From Oopsacas minuta (Eukaryota; Animalia; Porifera), in assembly GCA_024704765.1 (NCBI GenBank), contig JAKMXF010000277.1, forward strand, positions 310,001 to 374,000: a stretch of DNA of 64,000 bases. Direction: 5' to 3'. A model generated the notes under the pieces. The model saw nothing but the letters and a program-made list of their open reading frames with translations, ran no database searches and had not been told where the DNA came from. The translations under genes were made by a program, and so were the position numbers. Shown piece by piece: positions 965 through 64,000 of the stretch; position 1 is the first letter of the stretch; the number at the start of each line of letters is the position of its first letter.

Positions 965-1406
965 ATTTGAACTTTACATGTGTTTTGCTTTATTTAGCTT
1001 ACTAGAATTGAGATTATTTGTTTTGGTTAGTTTTGTAAAACTTCATAGTTTGTTATTATTTTAAAAGAAGTTCACGATCAATATTAGCCGATTGAAAGGG
1101 ACATTATTGCAAAATGGTTTTAACTGTTCCAGCTAATTTCAGGCTGTATTGTACTTTTAAATTAGATATGTATTAAATTTCATGTTTACTTTACTATGCT
1201 TTACTAGTGTATTAATTAATTAATGTCAACCCATATATCCTTTTGAGATATTTACAATATGTTGTTGTTTCCGCTACAAATCATACTTGTGCATAAGAGA
1301 ATTGAAATCGATTATATTTTATGTATATTAATATAGCTTTTTGTTGCAGAGTACTTGTAGCTATAGGTAATTTCCTCTACGTGGTTCAGTCACGGACATA
1401 TGCTCA

Positions 1407-3431
1407 ATGGCTGATGATGAACGTAGACACCAATATTTTCTGTCTCGAGCAACGAAGCGACTGAAACGAGATCTGAAATTAATCCTCACTGATCCTATTC
1501 CAGCTATCGATGTAGCACCGAATGAAGACGATATTCTAGACTGGCATTTCGCTATACACGGTAAGAATGACACTCCATACGAAAACGGTGTATACCATGG
1601 TAAGCTCGTGTTCCCTCCCAATTTTCCTTTTGGTCCACCTAAAATATTGTTCCTGACTCCAAACGGGAGATTTGAAGTGAACAAGAGGATTTGTTTCAGT
1701 CTGAGCGATTTCCACCCTGAAGAATGGAAGCCCGCATATTCAGTGACAGCTGTACTACGTGGTGTTTATGACTTTATGCATGAATCGACTGAAACTATTG
1801 GAAGCATTAATTCTAGTGTAAGTGCTAGAAAGCAATTAGCTCTTGACAGTAGAGAATATAATCTCAAAAATGATACATTTTGTAGACTGTTTCCTAATAT
1901 GATTCAAGATGATATGGGAAATGATGTAGATTCAGTTAGTCAAGACGAATCGAATCAAGGTAACAACGAGGTTGATTCGAGTGAGATTCCAGGGAGGATT
2001 GAAATGAATATAACACTAAAGACATATGCCATAACAAATCCTATTCCAGATCTTGGTACCAAAGTTCTACAGCATGAGACAACTGATACAATTGATTCTC
2101 ATCCTTCTACTCCTCAAAATCAAGATATTCTAGAAACAATTAATCCAAATTCAACTCCAGATCCTCAAAAACAGGAGGAAACTAGAATCATAAATTCCCC
2201 AGAAAACGAGATATCCAATCCTCCCCTGAACCCCGAGACTCCAAAGTCAGAAGATGGAATCAGATTCACAACTATATTTCCACCACCATTTAAGTCAGAT
2301 ATTAGCTCCGCCATTGAGCTTCAAGCAAGACAAACTCCTCCAATAAATGAACCAAATTCTCCAACACAGGATCAAGCTAATATTAATATTCACATCACAA
2401 ACGAAATAAATGAAGATCTGATTCCTCCAGAAAGATGTAATCCAAATTCTATTCTGAATCCTCAAAATCAAGAGGAAGCTAGAATCATAAATTCCCCAGA
2501 AAACGAGATATCCCGTCCTCCTCTAAACCCCGAGACTCCAAAGTCAGAAGATGGAATCAGATTCACAACTATATTTCCACCACCATTTAAGTCAGATATT
2601 AGATCCACCATTGAGCTTCAAGCAAGACAAACTCCTCCAATAAATGAAGATCTGATTCCTCTAGAAAGATGTAATTCTCCCTCAGTAAATAATGTGATGC
2701 CTCCAATGATAGACGAGAATATTCCTGCAGATAATGTAATCACTATACATACAGATACCGAGCTAAATGAAACTCTTACAAATGATACTCCTACACGACC
2801 ACCAGTTGGAATACCAATACCTCCTCCAGAAATGCCTTATAATACAGTTACATTACGAGAAGATTCTAATGCAGATCTCAATAGCTCCTTAATAGCTACA
2901 AGTTCAGGCAGTCCTATAGGTATTCCTGTACCTCAGCCTTCGATAAAGCTCCCAGCGCAAGAGCCTGTTCGCCCTGCTCGTCCATTCAAAATATCACCAA
3001 TATCACCTATACATTCTAGTTTATCACGAGAAAGGAATCCAAACTATAATCAACTTCCAGCATACGAAACACCACCACCCTATTCACCTAAACAAATTTC
3101 CAATACCTCTAAACAGCCGAATCCTTTAATGAATTATGCCATTGTTAATTCCCAGTATAATAATGCTGTTGTAATAGCGGATTCAGCTCGAGTACCAAAC
3201 AGAAAGAATCCTGCCAAAAGGCCAAGATCCATCCCCTTTATGTACAAAACGCAAAGTAGAAATCTTGGAGACATTGAAAAAGGAACTTTGCGGCAGGAGA
3301 GAAGTTACGAACTGCCAGAGATTAATCACCACGAAATTAACTGCTATTATATTACATTACTTGTAATAGTAATCATATCTGCTATTGGGCTTTTATATTT
3401 GCTTGCTATACTGACAATAAGCATTAATTAA
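1407..3431 (+). CDS. UBE2J/Ubc6-type ubiquitin-conjugating enzyme with long Pro-rich linker and C-terminal TM anchor (674 aa)
   Basis: N-terminal UBC fold with UBE2J-class signatures ATKRLKRD, WHFAIHG, FLTPNGRF and RIC(active Cys)FSLSDFHPEEW. Hydrophobic tail YITLLVIVIISAIGLLYLLAILTISIN at the C-terminus. Confidence 0.88.
   Translation: MADDERRHQYFLSRATKRLKRDLKLILTDPIPAIDVAPNEDDILDWHFAIHGKNDTPYENGVYHGKLVFPPNFPFGPPKILFLTPNGRFEVNKRICFSLSDFHPEEWKPAYSVTAVLRGVYDFMHESTETIGSINSSVSARKQLALDSREYNLKNDTFCRLFPNMIQDDMGNDVDSVSQDESNQGNNEVDSSEIPGRIEMNITLKTYAITNPIPDLGTKVLQHETTDTIDSHPSTPQNQDILETINPNSTPDPQKQEETRIINSPENEISNPPLNPETPKSEDGIRFTTIFPPPFKSDISSAIELQARQTPPINEPNSPTQDQANINIHITNEINEDLIPPERCNPNSILNPQNQEEARIINSPENEISRPPLNPETPKSEDGIRFTTIFPPPFKSDIRSTIELQARQTPPINEDLIPLERCNSPSVNNVMPPMIDENIPADNVITIHTDTELNETLTNDTPTRPPVGIPIPPPEMPYNTVTLREDSNADLNSSLIATSSGSPIGIPVPQPSIKLPAQEPVRPARPFKISPISPIHSSLSRERNPNYNQLPAYETPPPYSPKQISNTSKQPNPLMNYAIVNSQYNNAVVIADSARVPNRKNPAKRPRSIPFMYKTQSRNLGDIEKGTLRQERSYELPEINHHEINCYYITLLVIVIISAIGLLYLLAILTISIN
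2161..2680 (+). repeat. Internal coding duplication (period about 300 bp) in the E2 linker
   Basis: RIINSPENEIS.PPLNPETPKSEDGIRFTTIFPPPFKSDI.S.IELQARQTPPINE occurs twice (about 2161-2351 and 2459-2648) with near-identical DNA. INEDLIP.ERCN is also duplicated. Confidence 0.9.
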
Positions 3432-3456
3432 CTGAGTGACTTTTCTTTTAGTTATA

Positions 3457-3882
3457 TCTATATTATTAAATCTCAATGATTGTTTGTCCGTTGTCAAGGA
3501 AAGGATTTACGGTATGCAATTATGAAATTGTCGCATAACTATGTATTTATCGTGATTATACAGGAAGTAAATAGAATTCAATAAAACTTCACGAAATATA
3601 TCAAACATGCTGAATCTGATTTTCACACTTTTGGATTAATCATATGTAAATTTATTGTTGTTTTTATGAATAGAAAGTAAACAAATTTCAAAATTGAGGT
3701 AGACTCGTACTTTCAACGACTATACTGGTATACTCGAGTATGCTGAGTCTGATTATTGTAAACAACATCAATATTACTTAATCTCAATGATTGTTTGTCT
3801 GTTTGTTTGTTCGTTGAATACCTCGAGGCCGAATGCGCCGAGTTCATCGCGAAGCGACGAGCCAAAGGCTCGTTAGAGTGAA
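3457..3882 (+). repeat. Dispersed Helitron-like non-autonomous repeat family; other pieces near 6835-7135, 11200-11360, 50560-50810 and 56858-56980
   Basis: Shared blocks tctatattattaaatctcaatgattgtttg, gaatctgattttcacacttttggattaatc and the GC-rich 3' hairpin gcgaagcgacgagc.aaaggctcgttag. The Helitron assignment is inferred from the end architecture only. Confidence 0.55.
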
Positions 3883-4040
3883 TTTTAGAATATCTTTAGT
3901 GGAATATAGAAGATTTACACAATTTTTACAAAATACATAAATTCAGATCCTAATTACAAAATATATTACACATAACAATCATGAATATATTCTTACATCT
4001 CATTATAAATATGAGTACTAGCTTTAAATTCTACGATGGT

Positions 4041-5168
4041 CTAATCAAGTCCCATAAAATGTATACCTTTCTTAGATGCACGGATTTTAGTCATTCCAAA
4101 AGAGTCCGGTATTATGATAAGGAAGTGCTTGCTTTTGTTGCCAATTTGGGAGGTTAAATTTGTAAGTTGCATAGGTCGTTTAGATGCTAAAAAAAAACGC
4201 TCAATCTTATAATTTGTAATCCCTTGTATATTACAGTAGATCGGAAATAAACAATCATGAGAATACAAAATAGGATCATGCCCGGTAAAGAGGGATATAA
4301 ATCCAGATATTCTTTGTAATAAATCTTGATAAGTGTTGTATGGGAATAATCGTATTTCACAGTTAAAACTAAAATTCTGATCTCCACTATGATATCCAAT
4401 AGAGCACTGGTGTTGTGTAGCAGCTATAGGGACTTCAATCTTTAAATTTTTGAGATAAGTTCGTCTTTTGATTGGCACAGAACCTGGTGAGAGACCATTG
4501 AACCTTAACAACATATTCCAAGCCTTAGAATGTAACAACATACAATCATCTGGATTCTGGATTTGTCCATTTACATAGATATCAGATTGGTCGATGGGTA
4601 TGCTTGTTGGAAATTCCCAACTATCATTTGGCTGTGGATTGTTTAGATTTATAGAATTTTCAATTTCACTAAACCATTTCTTAGAAACTATAAACCATTC
4701 TTCATTAATCTGTGGTGAATAATTAAGAATTGGTTCCAGTTCCTTACTAAATTTAGATTTAGGCCAGAAAGGGATAATCTGAATAATATTCTCAAAATAA
4801 TCAAATTCAGGACAATTAATAGTTACATTTGATAACAGTTTCTGACATCGAGTTAAATCTAATATCTGTTTGTTCCAAACACATTTCTCCTGTTCCAAGA
4901 AGACTTGCATGCTGTTAGAGGTGAAATTATCCTCTATTGTTTCAATGGTATCGGTGAGTTGTTTAATATCAGCATTAACATGTAATAGCTCAGGTTTGTT
5001 AGTCTCCTCCAGCTGATTTAATTCTGACAATAATTCAAATTCTTTCTTATTTAATAACTGACGATAAATAGCAAAATTTGTCTTTATGAAAACTCTAGCA
5101 TCTGTGATAGAAAGACACTTATGATTGGCTGATTTGGGGTGTATTGTAGGAGGATTTGCAATCGCCAT
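4041..5168 (-). CDS. Coiled-coil plus DUSP-domain protein lacking a USP catalytic domain (375 aa)
   Basis: WFIVSKKWF...W...PIDQSDI...LLHSKAWNMLLRFNG...IKR matches the DUSP pattern of USP4/11/15. N-terminal heptad-like helix. No Cys-box or His-box. Confidence 0.65.
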   Translation of the reverse strand: MAIANPPTIHPKSANHKCLSITDARVFIKTNFAIYRQLLNKKEFELLSELNQLEETNKPELLHVNADIKQLTDTIETIEDNFTSNSMQVFLEQEKCVWNKQILDLTRCQKLLSNVTINCPEFDYFENIIQIIPFWPKSKFSKELEPILNYSPQINEEWFIVSKKWFSEIENSINLNNPQPNDSWEFPTSIPIDQSDIYVNGQIQNPDDCMLLHSKAWNMLLRFNGLSPGSVPIKRRTYLKNLKIEVPIAATQHQCSIGYHSGDQNFSFNCEIRLFPYNTYQDLLQRISGFISLFTGHDPILYSHDCLFPIYCNIQGITNYKIERFFLASKRPMQLTNLTSQIGNKSKHFLIIIPDSFGMTKIRASKKGIHFMGLD

Positions 5169-5299
5169 TTACCAAAAGCTAATTTGAAAATCCTTAAATG
5201 TATGAATTTAAGTGTAAGTTTTCAAATAAGGGAAATAAAGTCTCAAAATTGCCAACGTTGTAGAATTTACCAAGGTTTTGACTTTAACCAAATCTAATA

Positions 5300-5383
5300 C
5301 AGTCAACATCCGGTAACTCGAATGCCCATTAACTCGAACAGATTTTGATTTTCCCTGAGGGTTCGAGTTACCGGATGCTACTG
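5300..5383. mobile_element. Small Tc1/mariner-type MITE with TA TSD; similar CAGT-type MITEs near 6078-6237 and 15182-15329
   Basis: ta-cagtcaacatccggtaactcgaa ... ttcgagttaccggatgctactg-ta. Confidence 0.7.
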
Positions 5384-5851
5384 TAGTTCAAAATCGACTT
5401 CTGAATAGCAGCCTTACCGAACCACCTTTGCTTTAAGTAAATATTAATCATTTCGAAATTTCTCTGGCAAGTATATTTCACGACAACAACGTGAGTCTGT
5501 TCGCGAGTTTGCTGTTCGCTATGTATTCCCTCGATTATTCGTGGTTTTTGTCACGATTTATGTCAGTTTGGTAGAAAATTTTTTACTATGACGAAAATGT
5601 ATATTTCTCGATAAACACCCCCACTTACATGGACTATTTTCATTGAATTAACTTCTCGCTTGGCAATTTTGTCATTCGCGACAATTCTGAGGAAAGTAAC
5701 CCTTGCGAATTGCGAGAGCTTCCTGTAAACAAAATGTTACATAGATAAGATTCACGCAAAATAGCGATAAATGCAAGAATAATGAGAAATAAATATCTCA
5801 AATAATTCTCAAAAGAAACAAAGTACATAGAAAAATATGTATAATACAATT

Positions 5852-9807: not shown

Positions 9808-10818
9808 ATGAGGTTAACTGTGTTGCTTTTTGCTTGTGGGCTGCTGGTTGTCAACGCTGCTAACATCAATCTTGATTCATATCCATTCGAAGAAGAAATA
9901 ACCAAGGTGAACTCGTTGCCTAATGTTACCTGGACAGCTGGCAGACAAGCACGATTCGAAGGTATGACAGAGGAGGATGTTATGGCTCTATGTGGCGTGT
10001 TAGACGAGACATACAACTCACTCCCTATTTTAGATACCCCAGTGTTGGAAGATATTCCTACTGAATTTGATTCTCGCACTAGATGGCCGCAATGCTCTTC
10101 TATTGGTGATATACAAGATCAGAGCAATTGTGGATCATGTTGGGCTGTAGCAGCAGCAGAAGCAATGACAGATCGATACTGCATAGACTTGAATATGACA
10201 GTTAAAGTATCTGCAGCCGATTTGATGGAGTGTTGTGATACATGTGGTAATGGTTGTGAAGGAGGATTTCCTGGCAGTGCTTGGACATATTGGGTGATTG
10301 ATTGTATTTGTACTGGGGGAAAATATGAAGAATCTGTCAACAAATCCGACACCTGCAAACCGTATCCACTCAGAAGCTGTGAACACCATATCGTTGGTAA
10401 AGAGCCACCGTGTTCCAAGAAAATAGCCAAAACACCAGATTGCGTGAAAGCCTGTCACGCGGGATATACGATACCTTATGAACAAGACTTGCATTGCGGT
10501 TTAACAGCCTACACAATGAGTGGAGAAAGTAAGATACAGACGGAAATCATGACTAAAGGACCTGTAGAAGCAGCTTTTACTGTCTATGCTGATTTTCCAG
10601 CTTACAAGAGTGGTGTCTATCACAGAACCACTTTCCGCCAGTTAGGTGGACATGCAGTCAAGATCATAGGTTGGGGTGTGGAAGATGGTACGCCATATTG
10701 GACAGTAGCTAACTCCTGGAATGCTGATTGGGGTGACAAGGGCTTCTTCAAGATCAGGAGAGGACATGATGAATGTGGAATCGAGAGGGCCATATCGGTC
10801 GGGATGCCTAAAAACTAG
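9808..10818 (+). CDS. CTSB: Cathepsin B, intronless, 336 aa
   Basis: Signal peptide, propeptide, QSNCGSCWA (catalytic Cys), occluding loop CEHH, GGHAVK (His) and ANSW (Asn). Confidence 0.95.
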   Translation: MRLTVLLFACGLLVVNAANINLDSYPFEEEITKVNSLPNVTWTAGRQARFEGMTEEDVMALCGVLDETYNSLPILDTPVLEDIPTEFDSRTRWPQCSSIGDIQDQSNCGSCWAVAAAEAMTDRYCIDLNMTVKVSAADLMECCDTCGNGCEGGFPGSAWTYWVIDCICTGGKYEESVNKSDTCKPYPLRSCEHHIVGKEPPCSKKIAKTPDCVKACHAGYTIPYEQDLHCGLTAYTMSGESKIQTEIMTKGPVEAAFTVYADFPAYKSGVYHRTTFRQLGGHAVKIIGWGVEDGTPYWTVANSWNADWGDKGFFKIRRGHDECGIERAISVGMPKN

Positions 10819-11423: not shown

Positions 11424-12446
11424 TTAATTCTGAGTCAAAAACTGACGTATAATACTGTTAACCTCTACAGGCATATCTTGCTGCATCCAATGTCCACAGC
11501 GAATAATCTTATTCTCCACACGCTGGACATACTTCTCGTGACCTTCAGCCATTTTCGTTGAGATAAAAGGATCATGTTCTCCATTCAGAATCAAAGTTGG
11601 CACGTAAATGTAATCATAAACAATTCCTTCTCTCAGAAAATGAGTAAATACATTCCTGATATAGTTAATCGGACCGGTGAATGCACGATTTTGTGAGAAT
11701 GTATACAGAAAACTTTGCATATCTTCATCTGTAAATATTTCGCGATTTGTAAATCCATATTTTCTGCTTCGAAAAAGACTTTTAAACGCCCTGAAATCCT
11801 CCATCCTCATTAACATTTCAGGAAGATATGGTAATTGATAGAAAATAAAATACCATTGTCTGAATAACGAATCATTTTCGAGGTTAACTAAATCATTGTA
11901 CCTTCCAGGATGCGGACAGCACATAACTACGAATTTCTCAACCAAATCCGACCGTGTAAGTACAACTCCCCAACCAAACAGACCACCCCAATCATGACAA
12001 AGCAATGTACACTTATCAACACCAAGGTTTTTCAACAATTTAATGACGTCATCAACTGTATTGGTTATTGTGTATGCTGATTTATTCAATGGTTTATCAC
12101 TTTCTCCATATCCACGTAGATCTACAGCAATCACACGATAATCCTTGTTAAACTCTCGTATCTGGTAACGCCACGAGTACCAGAATTCAGGGAAACCATG
12201 TAGCATCAACATTACTGGCGCGTTTTCTGGTCCACTAATAACGCAATGTAGTTTGATACCATTAACAGTTATGAATTGATGCATTCCTAGTGACTGATCT
12301 TGTAGTGAAGGAGGACATGTGTATATTTTACGTGGAGTGAATAGTTTAGATGGGTGGAGTAGGAAATAGAAAAAGATCTTTAAGAATATCATTATGATAT
12401 TAAAGCAGGAATACACGAATAATAAGGCTATTCGTGATCTCTTCAT
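11424..12446 (-). CDS. Epoxide hydrolase, EPHX3/EPHX4 type (copy 1)
   Basis: N-terminal hydrophobic anchor, HGFPEFWYSW, DLRGYG, HDWGG nucleophile Asp, lid Tyr residues, GEHD acid and GHW His. Confidence 0.92.
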   Translation of the reverse strand: MKRSRIALLFVYSCFNIIMIFLKIFFYFLLHPSKLFTPRKIYTCPPSLQDQSLGMHQFITVNGIKLHCVISGPENAPVMLMLHGFPEFWYSWRYQIREFNKDYRVIAVDLRGYGESDKPLNKSAYTITNTVDDVIKLLKNLGVDKCTLLCHDWGGLFGWGVVLTRSDLVEKFVVMCCPHPGRYNDLVNLENDSLFRQWYFIFYQLPYLPEMLMRMEDFRAFKSLFRSRKYGFTNREIFTDEDMQSFLYTFSQNRAFTGPINYIRNVFTHFLREGIVYDYIYVPTLILNGEHDPFISTKMAEGHEKYVQRVENKIIRCGHWMQQDMPVEVNSIIRQFLTQN

Positions 12447-13183: not shown

Positions 13184-14200
13184 TTAAGTTTCCAAAAACA
13201 CTCTGATCTCCTTATTAACCTCATCAGGACAATCCTGCTGTAGCCAATGACTCCCATTAATATTCTTAACCCTGATATCCTCAACATACTTCTCATTACC
13301 CTCGCCTAGCTCTAAACTTAAGAAAGCATCATGTACACCCATCATTAACAAAGTTGGTACTTCGACCTTTTGAGCCTTAGGGATTTTAATATCCTTCGCA
13401 AACATATTTCGGTAATAATATAAAGGACATTTGAGAGCATTTTCCTGTGAAAATGTGTACAGGAAAGCTTGCATAGAATCATCATCCATACGATGAGAAT
13501 TAATTAGCCCAGAGGCAGTTCCATGGAAAGTCCGCTTTAGCGATAAATAGTTATCAGCTCCGAGAGTTAATTCAGGGAGTAAAGGTATTTGGAATAGCAG
13601 CACATACCATTGACGCAGTAAGGTTGCGTTATCTGTTCTAACTAATTCCATATAACGTTTAGCATGTGGACAACATAATACAATGAATTTCTTAACTAAA
13701 TCAGGTCTCTGTTGTACAACGCGCCATGCAAGTATCCCGCCCCAATCATGTGCTACTAATATGCATTTATCCTGACACATAGAAGATATTAACTCTATTA
13801 TATCAGAGGTTAGTTGTTGTCTTGTGTATGCAGATTTATCCAATGGTTTATCACTTTCTCCATATCCACGTAGATCTACAGCAATCACACGATAATCCTT
13901 GTTAAACTCTCTTATCTGGTAACGCCACGAGTACCAGAATTCGGGGAAACCATGTAGCATCAACATTACTGGCGCGTTTTCTGGTCCACTTATAACGTAA
14001 TGTAGTTTGATGCCATTAACAGTTATGAATTGATGCATTCCTAGTGACTGATCTTGTAGTGAAGGAGGACAAGGAAATACTTTACGTCTTGCGAATATCC
14101 TTAGAGGGTGAGTAAGGAAATGTATTAACAATAACAGATATAATGTAACAATTCTATACAGTGTGTAACTGAATAGAAGTAGATATTGTCCTTTCCTCAT
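13184..14200 (-). CDS. Epoxide hydrolase, EPHX3/EPHX4 type (copy 2, tandem paralog)
   Basis: Same motif set: HGFP, HDWGG, GVHD, SHW. Confidence 0.92.
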   Translation of the reverse strand: MRKGQYLLLFSYTLYRIVTLYLLLLIHFLTHPLRIFARRKVFPCPPSLQDQSLGMHQFITVNGIKLHYVISGPENAPVMLMLHGFPEFWYSWRYQIREFNKDYRVIAVDLRGYGESDKPLDKSAYTRQQLTSDIIELISSMCQDKCILVAHDWGGILAWRVVQQRPDLVKKFIVLCCPHAKRYMELVRTDNATLLRQWYVLLFQIPLLPELTLGADNYLSLKRTFHGTASGLINSHRMDDDSMQAFLYTFSQENALKCPLYYYRNMFAKDIKIPKAQKVEVPTLLMMGVHDAFLSLELGEGNEKYVEDIRVKNINGSHWLQQDCPDEVNKEIRVFLET

Positions 14201-46660: not shown

Positions 46661-47872
46661 ATGAAATTTGTATACAAATATTTAGTAAGTAATTATATCT
46701 TGGAGGTAATATTGGATATTATTTGTATTTGTGTCTTTTCTATCCACATTATTCTACTACTTGCATGGCTAATTGTCTTATTTCAATCTATAAAACGTTC
46801 GAGGGGGAAAATGAAGTATTCTATTCTAGCTCTATGCCAACAAGATGTCAAATTGGAGGCTCTAAATTCAAGAGTAGAATACCGTAAATGTTTATTCCTG
46901 TTTGCTATTGTATTATGCGAGCTAATTTCTTCAAGCTTTACCATACTCACAGGTATAAATTCAATATTTTATTTTTTCTCCAATCATTCTAATATACTGT
47001 CACATAATCATGATAGACCAGCATACAATATGGAAGGTGCTAGAGCAACTAATCTCACTCCATCATATGATTTCCCTAACTATAGTGTTTCAGTGGGCTT
47101 CAATGGTATGGCTTTTCATGTTGCTTTCGGTATTCCTTTGGTTTTAGCTTTCTCAATGGTTTACACTCTCATGTCCTATTATGTAATGGTAACTAAGAAG
47201 TCCCTGAATTACAATAACCCACTGAAATCAGTGGAATTAGCAAGTAAACACAAGTTTTTCCTTCTCAGTTCATCTCTTGCTTGTGTCATCCTGTTCTTAT
47301 TGTTACTAAGTGAGGAGGTGTATATCATTCTGCATATATTTGAGTGCTGCATTGTCACAGTACAATTAGTTCTTACATTTCACTACAGAGCTAAACTTAT
47401 TTGTGTTATCAAATGGAAGAAATTGGATGCTAAAATAGCATTTGGAAAAGACCATTATTTATTCAAATCATATTCGAATACCCTTCGAAAATTTAAAAGA
47501 TTCACATTTATTTATATTATTATTGTGGCTTCATTCTATCTTCATGTAATTTTCCGAATCCCAATAGTATTATTAACAGAGCATAAAGAATGGTTCCGTG
47601 TACTTACAAATGCACTACTCATACATTTTGATGGATTCAAGGAATTTTCTTACATAGCTAGTACAAGTGCATATATTCTTGAGGAAGCAGCTTTGTCTCT
47701 CTCCCTTATCTGTCTATTCTTCCTGAATATATGTAGTCTCCCTTTTTTGTTATCAAAAACAAATATAACTCCTCAATTCAACTGCAAACATTTCTGTTTC
47801 AGGGTTAATATGAACTTGAGGGAACCTCTGTTAAATAATATACATTATGTTTGGATTATTAATTGCACATGA
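46661..47872 (+). CDS. Orphan 7-TM-like membrane protein, copy A (403 aa)
   Basis: About seven hydrophobic segments, intronless. Paralog of 51031-52224 and 57301-58473. Confidence 0.75.
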   Translation: MKFVYKYLVSNYILEVILDIICICVFSIHIILLLAWLIVLFQSIKRSRGKMKYSILALCQQDVKLEALNSRVEYRKCLFLFAIVLCELISSSFTILTGINSIFYFFSNHSNILSHNHDRPAYNMEGARATNLTPSYDFPNYSVSVGFNGMAFHVAFGIPLVLAFSMVYTLMSYYVMVTKKSLNYNNPLKSVELASKHKFFLLSSSLACVILFLLLLSEEVYIILHIFECCIVTVQLVLTFHYRAKLICVIKWKKLDAKIAFGKDHYLFKSYSNTLRKFKRFTFIYIIIVASFYLHVIFRIPIVLLTEHKEWFRVLTNALLIHFDGFKEFSYIASTSAYILEEAALSLSLICLFFLNICSLPFLLSKTNITPQFNCKHFCFRVNMNLREPLLNNIHYVWIINCT

Positions 47873-48535
47873 GTGAATGTTGTATGAGTAATTGGTTGTT
47901 TTGGCTCAATTAAATTTTGAAAGTATACTTTGATAACATTGTATGGTCACTTGACAGGAAACAGAACCATGTCAGGTTAATCACTTCATTTCGGATAATC
48001 GGGTCAAAATGACCAGATCTGGTTTTTCAATTTCAAGATTGTTTATTTCAAAGGTTAAATTCAATCACATAAATATTTCAACTTAGATTGTTCAATTTCC
48101 CACTTCTTAGAAAAATTTGCCATAGCCTGAATTCTTCCACTCATTTGGCCAAAAATAATCTGCAGTAGCACTACTAGCCTGCCTGTGACTGCGTTTAACC
48201 AAAAAAATCAGAGCAGCCATGACAACGTTTCCAAACCTGTTGGTATCGTGAACGCCTTATCAATTTTCTTTGGACCATGCAGGTTGAGAAATCCTGAGTA
48301 ATGAAATGGAATAATATGAATTTATTGATTGAACACAAAAATAATTTGATAAGAATCGTTAATAATCCCTTTACAAACCGATACGATCTATAATCGTTAT
48401 TAAAAATTGTAATAATTCAAGTCTTTAAAGTTCTTTAGAAGATTTGTATAAACTGTATTATTGAAGTGATAATGCATATATATGTTCAATACAAATATGT
48501 TGGCAATTATAAAGAACTCAATATCCCCGAAAATT

Positions 48536-49566
48536 CTATAGAATTTTACAATTCTGTTTAGACTTCATACAACTTCTAGGCTTCAGAGCTGATAATATAA
48601 CTTCGTTAAATACGTTCTTCAATCCTTTATTTGTTAGAGCAGAGCACTCAACATATTTCATAGCGCCTATCTCTCTCATCATCTGAACGCCTTCAGGATG
48701 TGAGACTGGTGTTAGTCTCTTTCTTTTTAGTGTTGATAATGCATCTTGATCATCTCGCAAATCTAATTTAGTTCCAACGAGTATCTTGGGTATGCTCGCA
48801 CAATGGAAATTAACTTCAGGATCCCATTTGAGTTTTACGTTTCTGAAAGAAGACGGACTTACTAGTGAGAAACAAATCAAAAATGCATCTGCTTCTGGAT
48901 ACGACAACGGCCTTAAACTGTCGTAATCGGATGCACCTAACAATTATATAACAGTGAAACTCTAATAAGATGTATCCCTTTGAGAAACAAATCAGTAGTA
49001 CGTACGTACTTTCTGAGTGTACAATTTATGAATACGATCTGATTAAAATAAATAGGAAGTAATATCATACACTAACCTGATGTATCCCATAGTCTCATGT
49101 TAAGCGGCTTGTCATCAACCAGGACATTTGCAGAAAAGTTATCGAATCTAATTTGAGTAATAATTATTTAAATACAGTATTACCTTGAATAATTGCCCCC
49201 TTATAACTACTTACAGTGAATTATATTTTCCATTTATTTTGATCAATCAACTGTTTTTAGGATAAATGCAAATAATACAAGCACATAGATATGATTAACT
49301 CGAAGTTATCATGTTTAAAAATCGAAACTTCCCTCTTCAAATGAATAATCACCACGGATATTATTCGAGGTAATACTGTAATTAACTTACATAGTGGGGA
49401 TGTATGATTTTGGAAATTTACTATTCGTATAGCTTTCTAAGAGACAGGTCTTACCAACAGCTCTAGAGAAATAGAATGTAGATCAAATCAATAGTAAAGT
49501 CTAAGCATTTTGTGTAGTTACATAAACTCACCTGTCTCCGACTACAACACAGTTGATAAATATCAT
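48536..49566 (-). CDS. Atypical Rac-like Rho GTPase, 4 exons, 192 aa (G12R, A59S, Q61A)
   Basis: Exons 49566-49532 (35 nt), 49462-49391 (72 nt), 49147-49077 and 48936-48536. Motifs [48 protein letters not shown] and CAAX CKIL. Confidence 0.92.
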
Positions 49567-51030
49567 ATTCTGTTTCTTTAGCCTGAATTCTGCAAAATAT
49601 AAGAATTGAAAATATTTTAAAATAATTGCTAATAAAATCAGTAAATGTAATTACAGTTAATTTGATAACTAAATTTTAAAATACGGTATAATTATAATAA
49701 CTGGAATTTAATGATCAGTTATAATCCTATAAATTGATCAGCTAAAGCAAATTGAATATTTCAAATATATGTTAACTTACGCTTGTTAATATAATACTTG
49801 TAGAGTTGAGGATAAAGCTTTCTCAAATCGAATTTGCAATAACTGCATAGTCGAAATGTAAATTTTTAGACTAAACAACATGTAGATATTTAAGGTGGTT
49901 TAGTTAATTAAGCTGGTGAAGCAAACATTGCAAATAATAAAGTCAATTTTCACATTTTTCCGTATACTTATAGTTAGTAGCTCAACAATAAAAATCATAT
50001 TACTACAAAAATATCAAAACTATATTCAGAAGCATATGGTTATATCACTCACATTTCCAAGGTATTAGAATATTTTTCAAAGTACCTAAATGTCGGATAA
50101 TTAGAAGATCAATTCTTAGGAAATGTAAAGGCTCAAACTACTCAAACCATTTATACCTATAGTGTATTTCAATATGTATTCTTCAACACCTCCGGGATTA
50201 TTTTCATTTCCCAAAATGTTTCAATTGAAGAAACCCGCGAAATGATAAACAAACTTAAAGCAATTAATCACAAACCATAAACAATCATGTCAATTACTTT
50301 GCCTATTATTAAGATAATTAGTAAGAAGTTAATTTAACCGATTGCGTCGGGAAATGTGCGATCTTATGACGTCAATATGGTGCTGAAATCTCGATTTGAG
50401 TGCGGGAAGTGGTAAAATTCACGTGTTCCTTTTTGTTACGAACGTAACACTTCGGTCCTAATCGGTGAAGGTAGTTGAATGAAATTGGATATGGATTGTA
50501 AATGAAAATTATCGTCGATTTGCACGTATTGAAATCGAAAAATGTTGCTTATAGCAAAAAATAGACAGATGTTGTTGAATAACCATTCAAATCTCATAAT
50601 TCACGTAGATACTTGCTATAAACGGCTACATAGGGGGTTACTCTTACAAAATAATTCAATAACATATATGCCATATACGTATATTTGTGAATTACATTGT
50701 TCTAAATATATCTATATTATAATACTCAAAGGGGCCGTCAATTTGGAGAATAATGGATACCTCGAGGCACAATGCGCCGAGTTCATCGCGAAGCGACGAG
50801 CTAAAGGTTAGTAGTAGTAATATTATCAAGTACTGTACAGCTAGAAGTTAAATTATTATTGCGAACTTAGTTCTCAAAATTGCATACCATAATGATCCTT
50901 CCCCTGACAAACGACAATCAAACAAACATTGAGTATAATATACATATTAATAATACAAGCATAACAGATTCTAAATATGAAGATAAACTAGTTGTGATAG
51001 GAAGCACACTAAAAATCTACATAATGCAAA

Positions 51031-52224
51031 TTATTGTAACAAAGGTTCTCTCAAGTTCTTATTAATCCTGAAACAGAAACGTTTGCAGTTGAATTTAAAA
51101 CTTATATTTGTTTTTGATAATAAATAGGGCAGACTAATCAGGTTTAGAATGAATAGAAATATCAAGGAAACAGATATACATAATCGTGCTAGTGTTGATC
51201 CGACGAGAGAAAGGTAATTTAATACTTGTTTTACCTCTTCATTGATTTGTATGTGTAGTCCATAGGTACGTGACAAATTGTTAGCAAGAAAGAGCCCAAA
51301 AAACATCATTGAAGTACGGAAAATTACACCCAAATAGAAAAAATCCATAATAAATATATAAATAAACGTGAAGTATTTGAAATTTCGAAGAATATTCGAA
51401 TATGATTTGAATAAATAATGGTCTTTTCCAAATGCTATTTTAGCATCCAATTTCTTCCATTTGATAACACAAATAAGTTTAGCTCTGTAGTGAAATGTAA
51501 GAACTAATTGTACTGTGACAATGCAGCACTCAAATATATGCAGAATGATATACACCTCCTCACTTAGTAACAATAAGAACAGGATGACACAAGCAAGAGA
51601 TGAACTGAGAAGGAAAAACTTGTGTTTACTTGCTAATTCCACTGATTTCAGTGGGTTATTGTAATTCAGGGACTTCTTAGTTACCATTACATAATAGGAC
51701 ATGAGAGTGTAAACCATTGAGAAAGCTAAAACCAAAGGAATACCGAAAGCAACATGAAATATTCTATAATTGAAACCCATCAACCATTTTTTGGTCTCTG
51801 GAATACTATGGTGAGAAGGAGCATCATATGATGTAGTGAGATTAGATGTTATATTATTTGCTATCTTAACTGAGTTATGGTAATGGAACTCTGAGTAACC
51901 TACGTAAGCGGAGTATAATGAATATATGCCTAAGATTATTGTGAGGATAGAAGAAATTAGCTCGCATAATACAATAGCAAACAGGAATAAACATTTACGG
52001 TATTCTACTCTTGAATTTAGAGCCTCCAATTTGGCTTCTTGTTGGCATAGAGCTAGAATAGAATACTTCATTTTCCTCCTCGAACGTTTTATAGATTGAA
52101 ATAAGACAATTAGCCATGCAAGTAGTATAATGATATGGATAAAGAATATACAAATACAAATAATATCCGATATTATCTCAAATAGTAAATTTCCTGCATA
52201 TAAATTGATGAAAGTTTCATTCAT
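51031..52224 (-). CDS. Orphan 7-TM-like membrane protein, copy B (397 aa), inverted relative to copy A
   Basis: Shares a 367-bp block identical by eye and a 178-bp near-identical block with copy A. Confidence 0.75.
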   Translation of the reverse strand: MNETFINLYAGNLLFEIISDIICICIFFIHIIILLAWLIVLFQSIKRSRRKMKYSILALCQQEAKLEALNSRVEYRKCLFLFAIVLCELISSILTIILGIYSLYSAYVGYSEFHYHNSVKIANNITSNLTTSYDAPSHHSIPETKKWLMGFNYRIFHVAFGIPLVLAFSMVYTLMSYYVMVTKKSLNYNNPLKSVELASKHKFFLLSSSLACVILFLLLLSEEVYIILHIFECCIVTVQLVLTFHYRAKLICVIKWKKLDAKIAFGKDHYLFKSYSNILRNFKYFTFIYIFIMDFFYLGVIFRTSMMFFGLFLANNLSRTYGLHIQINEEVKQVLNYLSLVGSTLARLCISVSLIFLFILNLISLPYLLSKTNISFKFNCKRFCFRINKNLREPLLQ

Positions 52225-53286: not shown

Positions 53287-54261
53287 ATGAGCGGTGAGGT
53301 TCCTCGATTAGAATTCAACTTTTCTCAAACTGACTATGATCGAGAAGAATCAATAAGTCCTTATGATCTTAAAACTGTATCGGCAAATAATGAAAAATGG
53401 TTGGTTGACGAGGCATCGGCGTCACCCTCACCAGATTTCACTATTGCAGAAACAATAGAGGTTGTAGCCACAGAAAACCCGGAAAATTTGATTTCTGAAA
53501 AATCCCTACTTACAGATCGACTAAGTATTCTAGCGCCTGAACCTCTACTTCCTACTAAATACCACCCATTGTGTTTCTGTTACCGACATCCAGATGATTA
53601 CGATCACCATCAACCGAGAGTGTACACGAATGGAATACCTAATGATGAAGACGTCGTTATATACTCTGAAGTAGAAGGGGATGTTACGTGGGCGGAATTG
53701 AAGGCTGCCAGGCCAGACACTCCAAATCTTCACAAGCTATTCCCACTTCTACAATGGTGGCAGCATAATGAAGAAGAGGAAGCGTATCAAAAAGGATTGT
53801 TAGAAAAAGAGAAGAAAATTAGCAAAGTAATCGAAGATATCAGAAAAGCGACGGCAAATGAGAAGCTTAGGCTAGATAGATTATTTCCTTTACCAAACGT
53901 TACCCCGAAACAAATATGCACACCGAAACCAAAGTCTCCTAGTTTGAAACGGAACGAACATATCAATAAAGTTAACACACCCTATAAAACAGCTGATGCA
54001 CAAAGAAACAGACCAACCCTTAAGCAAACAAAGCAAAACACTTCTACATTAGAACGCAGAGGGCAAAAAGATAAGGTGAAAGCTTTGAATAAAGTTGTTT
54101 CTCTCAGCGATCATAGTTTGAGGGAAAAGAAAGCAAAGACCTTCATGCCGTTTTGTACACCAGAAGAGCATATATTCTATGAAATATATGGCTGTACAAA
54201 GAAAGAAATGCAGGAAAGAAGGGACCAAGAGAAGAGAATGAAAGCAGGTGTCAGGTTTTGA
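53287..54261 (+). CDS. Orphan 324-aa protein (acidic N-terminus, coiled-coil, basic C-terminus)
   Basis: Long ATG-initiated ORF in very AT-rich DNA; no family recognised. Confidence 0.6.
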   Translation: MSGEVPRLEFNFSQTDYDREESISPYDLKTVSANNEKWLVDEASASPSPDFTIAETIEVVATENPENLISEKSLLTDRLSILAPEPLLPTKYHPLCFCYRHPDDYDHHQPRVYTNGIPNDEDVVIYSEVEGDVTWAELKAARPDTPNLHKLFPLLQWWQHNEEEEAYQKGLLEKEKKISKVIEDIRKATANEKLRLDRLFPLPNVTPKQICTPKPKSPSLKRNEHINKVNTPYKTADAQRNRPTLKQTKQNTSTLERRGQKDKVKALNKVVSLSDHSLREKKAKTFMPFCTPEEHIFYEIYGCTKKEMQERRDQEKRMKAGVRF

Positions 54262-57300: not shown

Positions 57301-58473
57301 ATGACTGATCTAGAATCAAACTCTACAGGGATAGACCTTCTGTATTCGATTTCTATTAATAGCAATAAAGTGTGTACAATAATATTGTATGCTTCGATGT
57401 TCAGTTTGTGTTTTCTATCTTTCATTTGGTCAATTAACTTAATTTTCTCTGTTCTAAAAGAGAAAAAGAATCAAAAGAACCTCTACGAAATGAAGAATTC
57501 TATCCAAAGAGAACTATGGAAGCTAAAAATTGTGAATAGCGAAAGGAAAATAATTAGAAATAAATTTTTAATCGCAATTACCACAATAGAATGGCTAATG
57601 ATGTTTAGTATATGCTCAATGGTGATTATGGGAACCACAAGAACATTTGTTGATAATAGAGAATTCTTTATATACCCAATAATAATGTCTAATTGTTTAT
57701 ACAATACAATGGCAGAAGATTTCTGGGGAAAATTATTAATCACATTTATCGTGACTATTTTCCTTTTTCAACTCATCCTACTTAGAATACTTACACAATA
57801 TCTATGTTCACAATACAATTTCTACACTAATGGAATATTCAGGATAAGTAGACAATTCAAATTAGCAATTTTCTGGTTGATAATTATTTTCATACTCGGG
57901 TTAATCCGTCAGACAATCATCTTACAATGGATTATAGTTGATATTTACTTCGCATATGAATTTGCTTGTTACTTCAAGGCTACAATATTACTCGCAAACC
58001 TCCTATACAAGCGATACTTTGACGCCAAATTTCATGAATATCAAGCCAACTCAGTCGTCGCGTATTACAGATGGGCATATATAGAGTTCAAAATTGGTTC
58101 CTGTATCCTCGTGGCATCATTCTTCATGCATGTATTGAGTTTGATTACATTTGTGATATTTTCAATCTTGTGGTTAGTTCTCACTTCTCCAAATCATTGG
58201 ATTCAAGTCTTATTCCTAAACGGGAAAATTGAAGATTTCAATTTATTTTCTCATCATTATCGACAACAGTTACAAATATTTCTTGAAGTGTACAATAGTA
58301 TGGAATTAGTGTGTTTGGCAATTGGCTGGAGTTTACTTGTTATCCCTTACGTCATCGTCTCTCTGAGACTTTGCTCAAATACAATACGAAAGCCTTTTAG
58401 AATCTACGACTATAAGAATCGTGAATTAATTCAAGCACTAATAGAGAAAAATAATCAGTGTTATCATAAATAA
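57301..58473 (+). CDS. Orphan 7-TM-like membrane protein, divergent family member C (390 aa)
   Basis: Shares KL..NS......R..FL.AI...E and L.....DAK......Y.....FK with copies A and B, and a similar hydrophobicity layout. Confidence 0.7.
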   Translation: MTDLESNSTGIDLLYSISINSNKVCTIILYASMFSLCFLSFIWSINLIFSVLKEKKNQKNLYEMKNSIQRELWKLKIVNSERKIIRNKFLIAITTIEWLMMFSICSMVIMGTTRTFVDNREFFIYPIIMSNCLYNTMAEDFWGKLLITFIVTIFLFQLILLRILTQYLCSQYNFYTNGIFRISRQFKLAIFWLIIIFILGLIRQTIILQWIIVDIYFAYEFACYFKATILLANLLYKRYFDAKFHEYQANSVVAYYRWAYIEFKIGSCILVASFFMHVLSLITFVIFSILWLVLTSPNHWIQVLFLNGKIEDFNLFSHHYRQQLQIFLEVYNSMELVCLAIGWSLLVIPYVIVSLRLCSNTIRKPFRIYDYKNRELIQALIEKNNQCYHK

Positions 58474-60021: not shown

Positions 60022-61616
60022 TCAAAAACAATACGTGTTCTTCTTATCACCAACGTTAGAATCTGGATCTATTATAACCCTGTTATTGTGCATAATATCA
60101 CCAGTATTGTACCTCTCCTTGTTTTCAAATAAACTCCTTTTAATATCACAAACAATGGTCAAAAAGGCTTGCTCTACATTAATAGCACACTTTGCACTTG
60201 TCTCTATGAAGTTAATCTTCATTTCATCAGCAAACTCTTTAGCTGTAGAGTAGTCTATTATCTTCTGACTTGTCATATCACATTTATTGCCTACCAACAA
60301 CTTACATGCATTTGGAATGCAGTAAGTTTCAATTTCCTGTAGCCATTGCTTAATATTACCTAGAAATTTGATAAAATACTCAATTGAAAATACATTAAAC
60401 AATAAATTCAAGGATAACACATTCATTATTCAAATTTTTCCAAACTATTGGAGACTGAAAAGTATATTATTCAATCACAACTAACAAACCTAATGGTGTA
60501 TAAGATTTTCCAAAAAGGAAGCCTTTGGCCAGTGCTGCCAAGTGAATTCAGAAAATTATTGAGATTGACAAAAAATTTATGTAGAAACCAAATTCTTTAC
60601 GGAGCATTTATAATTCCTTATTGAGCCTAACAGGTCTTAATTTGCTTTTACAAATGCCATTAGCTAACAACTTTTATTAATAATCATTAATATATGTAGA
60701 TATATGCACGCTTTCGCGTTTGTAAACAATAAATTTTAATCACTATCAGCATGCAACAAACTATCAAACTACTATTGTATATGGTCGTACATACTTTGAG
60801 AAAATAACTCGCACATTTTCGAGGTAGGTACAAACGTTGAGGAATTTTGAATATTGACCTTTATCGTTAGCAAAAGTATTACACGTACAGGTAATTCGAT
60901 AGAAATATATAGAAATAAGTCTTCATACGTAGATACGTAGATAACAGTCAAATTTACATAGTCTACATAAATTACGGAGATTTGGCAGCACTTCCTTTGG
61001 CTGACACGAAGTGTTAGAAAGCGCGCACCGCAAGCAAGCGAAGTGGCTTGTTATTCTAGAATAGGAAATTTCCTATCGCCGATAAATCGATAAATTAGTG
61101 TCAACAAGTTTCAAATTTAACTTGAATTTTTCCAAATATTACAAGATCTGTTCCCAAACATTTTAGTAACGGAAGAATGTACGAACTTTCATTATATCAA
61201 CATTTACCATATTCCTAGACAAAATGGACAAATCGAAGACTCATTCTGCTTAGTTAATGATAACAGGCTATGATTCATATCGTAGTAACTTAGAGCACAT
61301 TATTGTTTGCCACAAACTTACTGAAAGTATCTTGATCAGTGACGTCATACACCATCATGATACCATGCGCACCTCTGAAATATCCTTTAAATGCACCCAG
61401 AGAATTCGCGAACCTGAAAGAAATGAATGTATCCCATATCTGTAGCTTGATAGTTTTACCATCTACATTAACAGTGTGGACTCTAAAGTCCACAGGATGC
61501 AGTCTAAAGTACTCAGTGTATGAATCTTCCACAAACCGTAGAAGGAGATTGGACTTTCCGACTCTTGAATCACCGACTATGAGAAGTTTGAATAGGTAGT
61601 CATAATCTACACTCAT
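60022..61616 (-). CDS. Rab1-like small GTPase with degenerate switch I and II, 2 exons, 210 aa
   Basis: Exons 61616-61322 and 60359-60022 form a phase-1 join [45 protein letters not shown] and ETSAK are Rab1-like. Confidence 0.85.
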
Positions 61617-63291: not shown

Positions 63292-63580
63292 TTAAGAGAA
63301 TCCGTTTATCATGCGTAATATCACCAGTGTTGCTATTCTCCTCGTTTTCAAATAAATTCCTTTTGATATCACAACAATGGTTAAAAAGGCTTGCTCTACA
63401 TTAATAGCACACTTAGCACTTGTCTCTATGAAGTTAATCTTCATTTCATCAGCAAACTCTTTAGCTGTAGAGTAGTCTACTATCTTCTGACTTGTCATAT
63501 CACATTTATTGCCTACCAACAACTTACATGCATTTGGAATGCAGTAAGTTTCAATTTCCTGTAGCCATTGCTTAAAATTA
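63292..63580 (-). pseudogene. Exon 2 of a tandem Rab1-like paralog, with a frameshift; exon 1 presumably beyond the window
   Basis: Near-identical to 60359-60100 including the acceptor tttctag|GTAAT. A 1-nt deletion near 63372 alters the C-terminus. Confidence 0.7.
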
Positions 63581-64000
63581 CCTAGAAATTTGATTTCTGG
63601 ATGCCAAAACTCGTCTCGTACCACTTTTCGCAGGCAAATCTGGTCGGGACAGATCACTTTTAGTTGCTAAAACAAGTATCTGATTATTTTTAGCCAGCTA
63701 AAACTGGTCACCGCCACTTTTTGGGAACCAAAACCTGTCCAGGTAAAATTTTGGGCTATCTAGAAATTATAACTATGTGTTAATTATGCACCATTTAATC
63801 TGTTCAATAAATCAAATTTCTATCAAATTTCTATATCTCTATAAGGCATAGTCTCCTGAAGGAACAAGAAAACGATTCAAGAAAATACCAATAATCATGC
63901 TTTCAAAAGAATGCTGATAGTATATCCATAGAAAAAGTATAAGATGAATGTATTGAGAATTCAGAAGGCAGAATTATCTGACACAGAATTTGTATTTCAA

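Follow-up and report, generated by a model that had tools for sequence, protein, structure and literature searches.

GTPase-deficient Rho proteins such as Rnd and RhoH have been described chiefly in eumetazoans and vertebrates. Gly12 and Gln61 (Rac1 numbering) are the residues by which Rho proteins and the arginine fingers of RhoGAPs hydrolyse GTP, and RND1-3 and RHOH, which lack both residues and keep the nucleotide-binding motifs, are regarded as GTPase-deficient and GTP-bound (PMC8305018). The Rnd proteins carry terminal extensions; they are farnesylated (PMC8305018). RhoH is a haematopoietic vertebrate gene with a C-terminal insert, and its similarity to the other Rho proteins is below 50% (PMC8072805, PMC8305018). 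The origin of Rnd has been placed before Cnidaria, and sponges have been listed with Rho, Rac and Cdc42-type genes only, together with lineage-specific Rac duplications (PMC7600811). On the Rac scaffold, deamidation by the toxin CNF1 produces Rac1 Q61E, in which GTP hydrolysis is gone and which stays active (PMC12607883, PMC3206620); this toxin-made form is removed by ubiquitylation, with Lys147 as the likely acceptor (PMC3408975). In Ras, KRAS G12R shows low intrinsic and low GAP-stimulated hydrolysis (PMC8767686). Our literature search found nothing on Rac1 G12R, Rac1 Q61A, Cdc42 G12R or RhoA G14R.

Here, we describe a Rac-like gene of the glass sponge Oopsacas minuta (Hexactinellida) that encodes neither Gly12 nor Gln61. 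The window, that is, the whole stretch of 64,000 nucleotides analysed, lies on contig JAKMXF010000277.1 (GCA_024704765.1), and adding 310,000 to a window coordinate gives the contig coordinate. An earlier note on this stretch, made from its letters alone, had proposed an intact, spliced product of 192 aa that numbers exactly like Rac1, and this was confirmed by a gap-free alignment to 192-aa Rac1 proteins. The gene occupies 49566..48536 of the minus strand, and its four exons, separated by introns that are all GT..AG, form an ORF of 579 nt including the TAG stop. The program-made ORF list contains the last exon alone, as an ORF of 135 aa, and does miss exons 1-3 as the note had remarked. The parts of the gene are as follows, with the splice joints seen in the RNA-like sequencing run X4.

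49567..49598, minus strand: 5' untranslated region, at the minimum extent given by the contigs of run X4
49532..49566, minus strand: coding part of exon 1, 35 nt, with the ATG at 49566, 11 codons and the AG of codon 12, ending GAC AG|gtgagt
49463..49531, minus strand: intron 1, 69 nt, GT..AG, at CDS nt 35, phase 2; joint 49462>49532 in X4
49391..49462, minus strand: exon 2, 72 nt, opening with the A that makes codon 12 AGA (Arg), followed by AVGKT and switch I as far as Thr35
49148..49390, minus strand: intron 2, 243 nt, GT..AG, at CDS nt 107; joint 49147>49391 in X4
49077..49147, minus strand: exon 3, 71 nt, encoding FDNF...LWDTS, with the Ser59 codon at 49080..49078 and the last base opening codon 60
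48937..49076, minus strand: intron 3, 140 nt, GT..AG, at CDS nt 178, phase 1; joint 48934>49075 (cut +2) in X4
48536..48936, minus strand: coding part of exon 4, 401 nt including the stop at 48538..48536, with the Ala61 codon at 48934..48932; the exon further covers the remainder of switch II as well as TKLD, the Rho insert, CSAL and the CAAX box CKIL (48550..48539)
48504..48535, minus strand: 3' untranslated region, approximate, high X4 depth starting at about 48504

The spliced translation agrees with the earlier reading of the motifs, in which Thr35, Asp57, Gly60, TKLD, CSAL and CKIL are kept alongside the altered GDRAVGKT and WDTSGASDY. The protein has a Ras-fold G domain (Pfam Ras, 1.9e-21 at exon 4) with GxxxxGKT as GDRAVGKT, Thr35 within YIPTIFDNF, DxxG within WDTSGASDY (Asp57, Ser59, Gly60, Ala61), TKLD and CSAL, and it has a Rho insert at residues 123-135 and the C-terminal CKIL, which predicts geranylgeranylation. 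A classical Rac is defined by Gly12 and Gln61, and here we found Arg12 and Ala61. A nucleotide-free pseudo-GTPase is marked by loss of the P-loop Lys/Thr, of NKxD or of SAK, and all of these were found to be invariant in the six species compared below. With canonical Rac1 (KAI6653338.1; in human, RAC1 structures 1i4d and 1mh1 among others) the protein shares its length of 192 aa, motifs G1-G5, Trp56, the Rho insert and a geranylgeranyl-type CAAX box. It differs by G12R, A59S, Q61A, E62S, R66S, the replacement of Lys147 by Arg and a changed sequence at switch I residues 25-31. The protein also departs from Rac1 at switch II positions 62, 63 and 66 and switch I positions 25-33, with possible effects on nucleotide affinity or on the choice of effectors that are not to be read from the sequence.

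Transcription and the accuracy of the letters were examined in four public runs, all of the same sample and study, three of them DNA-like and one (X4) RNA-like by behaviour; the O. minuta genome paper describes RNA-seq, paired-end DNA, Nextera mate-pair and PacBio libraries (PMC10280926). Word depth in X4 was roughly 1000-5800 over the four exons versus 0-25 over the introns, a depth that, coming from a single sample kept as contigs, yields neither an expression ranking nor transcript ends, and it was zero over 49626-49800. All three predicted joints were present in the X4 contigs, each reading CT..AC on the plus strand, without variant letters inside the exons. The earlier note had singled out the exon 1/2 junction (AG|A for Arg12) as the point to verify by RNA-seq, and had named a lack of transcripts or different splicing as evidence against its proposal; the junction was found exactly as predicted. 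A 139-nt contig joins 49532-49598 to 49391-49462 across intron 1 with all letters matching, indicating that the Arg12 codon exists in mRNA. The three DNA runs match the window across the gene, and their sole difference, at 49690, falls outside it. Since the DNA runs and X4 both agree with the window, Arg12, Ser59 and Ala61 are real in DNA and mRNA.

The public O. minuta gene model at this locus is a protein of 347 aa with a Ras Pfam hit, spanning window positions 48536-52071. It starts at Met52 of a 7TM-like ORF (51031..52224) and ends at the stop codon of the Rac-like gene, and it looks like a chimeric prediction that fuses the Rac-like gene to its 7TM-like neighbour. No support for a fusion transcript was found in the X4 contigs within the stretch examined, and these contigs stop near 49598. 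The merged annotation makes the Rac-like gene invisible in protein-based surveys of sponge Rho GTPases, and it accounts for the absence of the gene from the results of our own initial protein search. Rac, Rho and Cdc42 are not mentioned in the O. minuta genome paper (PMC10280926), and our literature search found no paper describing the Rac-like family.

The earlier note had derived the gene from Rac and had suggested a phylogeny that sets Rac against Rnd, RhoH and RhoU; similarity, intron positions and a tree of Rac sequences, the last with weak support, agree with an origin in Rac and not in the other three. When the last exon was searched against the PDB, the best matches were Rac1 (178 bits), then Rac2 and Rac3 (about 169) and Cdc42 (153), and the best 60 matches were all Rac or Cdc42. 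In a word-index search with the same exon, the nearest database proteins, one orthologue aside, were canonical Rac1 proteins at about 60-63% identity. Over the full length, identity was 124/192 to Amphimedon Rac1, with no gaps, and 125/192 (65%) to the canonical O. minuta Rac1 (KAI6653338.1, our P0248), with no indels; the latter is encoded at L012:4001-4701 on the same contig, about 356 kb from the Rac-like gene. Trp56, a Rac-type residue, is present in the protein and invariant among the six orthologues.

In Amphimedon Rac1, the coding sequence is interrupted after nt 35, 107 and 178, at the positions and phases found in the Rac-like gene, and by three more introns downstream, so that its first exons of 35, 72 and 71 nt bear out the note's remark that the first two exons are Rac1-like. 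In canonical O. minuta Rac1 the exons measure 35, 143 and 401 nt. Introns at nt 35 and 178 and a fused last exon of 401 nt are common to this gene and the Rac-like gene; the intron at nt 107, which is ancestral and is kept in the Rac-like gene and in Amphimedon Rac1, has disappeared from the canonical gene. The common intron positions, the common 401-nt last exon and the kept nt-107 intron thus argue for a DNA-level duplication within the glass-sponge lineage, and they point to a duplication older than the loss of the nt-107 intron from canonical O. minuta Rac1. We had also considered a partial retrocopy that lost the three 3' introns; this was ruled out, as canonical Rac1 has the same 401-nt exon and the paralogue keeps an extra intron. 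In a maximum-likelihood tree of Rac sequences, the divergent genes formed one clade (100/100) on a long stem, and in the best such tree this clade joined the canonical Rac1 of O. minuta and Vazella with weak support (62/73). Judged by its introns and its relatives, the Rac-like gene is a glass-sponge-specific paralogue of Rac1 that arose by DNA-level duplication.

Only one closer relative, P0001, emerged from the word-index protein search with the last exon. The other orthologues had been missed by gene callers and were found by synteny, by way of the neighbouring 324-aa ORF (53287..54261); absence from the protein search list therefore means little. A scan of JGI metagenomes found no relatives. 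P0001 led to locus L001 on a 570-kb ENA contig, where the same four exons lie in conserved synteny with the window, and in all we found intact orthologues in five other glass-sponge assemblies, with exons of 35, 72, 71 and 401 or 404 nt. The earlier note had treated the O. minuta gene by itself; its Arg12 and Ala61 stand, but the gene belongs to a six-species orthologue family, whose residues at the positions of interest are as follows.

L001: Gly12, Cys13, Ser59, Gln61
L003: Gly12, Cys13, Ser59, Glu61
L007/L008: Gly12, Ala13, Ser59, Glu61
L010: Glu12, Ala13, Ser59, Glu61
L004/L005 (Vazella pourtalesii): Glu12, Ala13, Ser59, Glu61
O. minuta (window): Arg12, Ala13, Ser59, Ala61

Ser59 is thus fixed in the family, a residue that recalls Rnd, while position 12 drifts among Gly, Glu and Arg and position 61 among Gln, Glu and Ala. 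The codons in use are one step apart, being GGA, GAA and AGA at position 12 and CAG, GAG/GAA and GCA at position 61. On the tree ((L001,L003),(window,(L004,L010,L007))), position 12 changed at least two times and position 61 three times, and Ala61 of O. minuta is most likely derived from a Glu61 ancestor. Several orthologues encode Q61E, the change that CNF toxins impose on Rac1: Glu61 stands on a Rac scaffold in four of the five other orthologues, as in the CNF1-made protein, but is here encoded genetically and evolutionarily stable, and the O. minuta copy, with Ala61, is one step beyond it.

Some further observations were made at these loci. In Vazella pourtalesii, exon 4 has tandem acceptor AGs 3 nt apart (cag|gag|; L004:8149-8155, L005:1105-1111), of which the distal one, if used, would delete Gly60. 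In a sixth assembly, a far more degenerate Rho lies beside a homologue of the 324-aa neighbour (L006:16600-17428, minus strand), with the P-loop GNKGVGKS, a poly-Asp run after WDTA in place of switch II, and no CAAX box. A single ENA assembly contains two different homologues of the 324-aa neighbour, on contigs of unequal coverage, L009 (ERZ25766962, 46x) and L001 (of the same sample, 139x), with a Rac-like gene near L001 only; the sample may hold the genomes of two sponges, or one of the regions may be a paralogue of the other.

The note had proposed dN/dS against orthologues as a check, with a value near 1 speaking against function, and pairwise dN/dS (NG86) was about 0.04-0.17 for all orthologue pairs. 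In the unsaturated pairs, it was 0.06-0.07 at dS 0.28-0.45 among L004, L007 and L010, and 0.16 for L001 and L003. Maximum-likelihood estimates for the pairs window-L010, L001-L007 and L001-L010 were discarded, their dS of 0.2-0.27 being implausible against 1.3-1.8 by NG86. Across the 192 alignment columns of the six species, 120 are invariant, including G10, D11, G15, K16, T17, F28, Y32, P34-F40 (with I/V at 36) and W56-G60, as well as Y64, D65, L67-Y72, TKLD, CSAL, most of the Rho insert and the CAAX cysteine. These values show a family that is under purifying selection and must still fold, bind nucleotide and meet partners. At least three states occur in 26 columns, positions 12 and 61 among them, although conservation of either position across 42 canonical Racs is 100%. 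L007 and L010 differ at no more than eight residues, and residue 12 is among these. The alignment shows constraint to be lost specifically at positions 12 and 61, where the identity of the residue would no longer be selected. Over the G domain (residues 1-176), O. minuta and Vazella differ at 33 positions versus 3 in canonical Rac1, a rate about eleven times faster, and the window copy sits on a terminal branch (0.33) that does not exceed its sister lineage in length. Five of the six orthologues have Arg at position 147, and only L003 has Lys; given the likely role of Lys147 in removing Rac1 Q61E, its replacement by Arg fits a constitutively active protein, which is only suggestive.

We consider it reasonably probable that O. 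minuta has here an atypical Rac that is anchored in the membrane and constitutively bound to GTP, and that its expression, placement or degradation determines how active it is. The features required for folding, Mg-GTP binding, geranylgeranylation and a Rac-type effector loop all appear to be kept, while the catalytic machinery would be lost with Gln61 to Ala and Gly12 to Arg. With its Mg and guanine contacts intact and with Arg12 and Ala61, the protein should load GTP and keep it: GTP would be loaded after synthesis, hydrolysis would be very slow and arginine-finger RhoGAPs would elicit no response, and output would then be set by expression, localisation or turnover instead of by a GEF/GAP cycle. 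The earlier note had spoken of an independently evolved, Rnd/RhoH-like GTP-locked Rho; an intact, expressed and Rac-derived gene without either catalytic residue was indeed found, and the GTP-bound state, the insensitivity to GAPs and the mode of regulation are what we infer from the biochemistry of Ras and Rho mutants.

In lacking Gly12 and Gln61 and keeping the nucleotide-binding motifs, the O. minuta protein resembles Rnd1-3 and RhoH. It differs from Rnd in having 192 aa without extensions and a CKIL box that ends in Leu, and from RhoH in being a sponge protein that is 65% identical to Rac1. From its nesting with Rac1 in the PDB matches and the Rac trees, we take the family not to be Rnd or RhoH by descent. 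In oncogenic Ras G12R and Q61 mutants, the equivalent positions are substituted, but those are somatic disease alleles of Ras, as opposed to a germline, selected state of a Rho-family protein. The glass-sponge genes are probably an independent, Rac-derived and lineage-specific group of hydrolysis-deficient Rho proteins. If so, one of the animal lineages that branched earliest came upon the same trick independently, starting from Rac. The orthologues, as natural variants of positions 12 and 61 on a nearly constant background, offer a test of how much loss of hydrolysis is tolerable in a useful Rho switch.

Catalytic loss is not uniform across the family: L001 keeps both Gly12 and Gln61, and two further species keep Gly12, so the orthologues as a group are not uniformly catalytically dead. 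Rap GTPases, which have Thr61 in place of Gln61, are still turned off, because their GAPs contribute a catalytic residue in trans (an asparagine in RapGAP), and by this precedent the absence of Gln61 is by itself no proof of constitutive GTP loading. The Rac-like protein might likewise be a regulated switch, cycling between GTP and GDP despite Arg12 and Ala61 with the help of a dedicated GAP, and Glu61 of the relatives may itself be catalytic. Drift at positions 12 and 61 while Y64, D65, L67-Y72 and residues 34-40 are frozen is as expected if a partner reads these surfaces, and L001 keeps the usual residues at both positions. We nevertheless judge such a switch unlikely: we identified no candidate GAP, Q61E abolishes hydrolysis in Rac1 itself (PMC12607883), and Arg12 is bulky and gets in the way of the RhoGAP arginine finger (PMC8305018, PMC8767686). 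Drift at both catalytic positions is explained more simply by hydrolysis not being selected.

It is slightly more doubtful still that the protein is a pseudo-GTPase for which the bound nucleotide is of no consequence, perhaps nucleotide-free or GDP-bound, acting as a scaffold or as a decoy that titrates GEFs, RhoGDI or effectors away from canonical Rac1. The wrecked P-loop and switch II of the Rho at L006 would suit such a role, and so would the changes at residues 59, 61, 62 and 66, which contact GEFs and GDI. However, the five G motifs and the Mg ligands Thr17 and Thr35 are invariant in six species at a dN/dS of about 0.1, which would be hard to account for in a protein indifferent to nucleotide, and the CAAX box and polybasic lysines are retained. 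A decaying duplicate, or an artefact of assembly or annotation without function, is highly improbable in spite of the lost catalytic residues, the 347-aa public model that runs into the neighbouring ORF and the roughly elevenfold faster G domain, since all six species keep an intact ORF and the four exons, dN/dS is far below 1, spliced RNA contigs occur at high depth, the DNA contigs of three libraries match the window across the gene, and the terminal branch of the window copy does not exceed its sister lineage.

Returning to the constitutively GTP-bound Rac that we favour, one may extend it, with much speculation and little expectation of being right as a whole, to a natural allelic series in which G12/Q61, G12/E61, E12/E61 and R12/A61, on a scaffold otherwise unchanged, are successive stages by which a cycling switch becomes a constitutive signal. 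Hydrolysis would be tuned by lineage and the loss of Lys147 would compensate by allowing a permanently active Rac to persist, giving a transcription-controlled cytoskeletal driver in a syncytial animal without Wnt/PCP signalling, possibly coupled to the orphan 7TM genes that flank it in several of the species.

As for these neighbours, the Rac-like gene lies between inverted 7TM-like paralogues at 46661..47872 (plus strand) and 51031..52224 (minus strand). 7TM paralogues also lie near the orthologue in L001 and L007/L008 and are absent within the fetched flanks of L003 and L010; they are what ordinary synteny would give, and a functional module is therefore not established. The window holds three such intronless ORFs of 390-403 aa without a Pfam match, the two just named (46661-47872, plus, and 51031-52224, minus) and a third at 57301-58473 (plus). 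Related last exons of Ras-family genes, with a 25-residue stretch in common, were found at 60022-60426 (minus; Pfam Ras 7e-20) and 63292-63657 (minus). Elsewhere in the window there are two tandem intronless ORFs of about 340 aa each with the look of alpha/beta-hydrolases (epoxide-hydrolase-like), at 11424-12446 (minus) and 13184-14200 (minus), and an intronless cathepsin B gene at 9808-10818.
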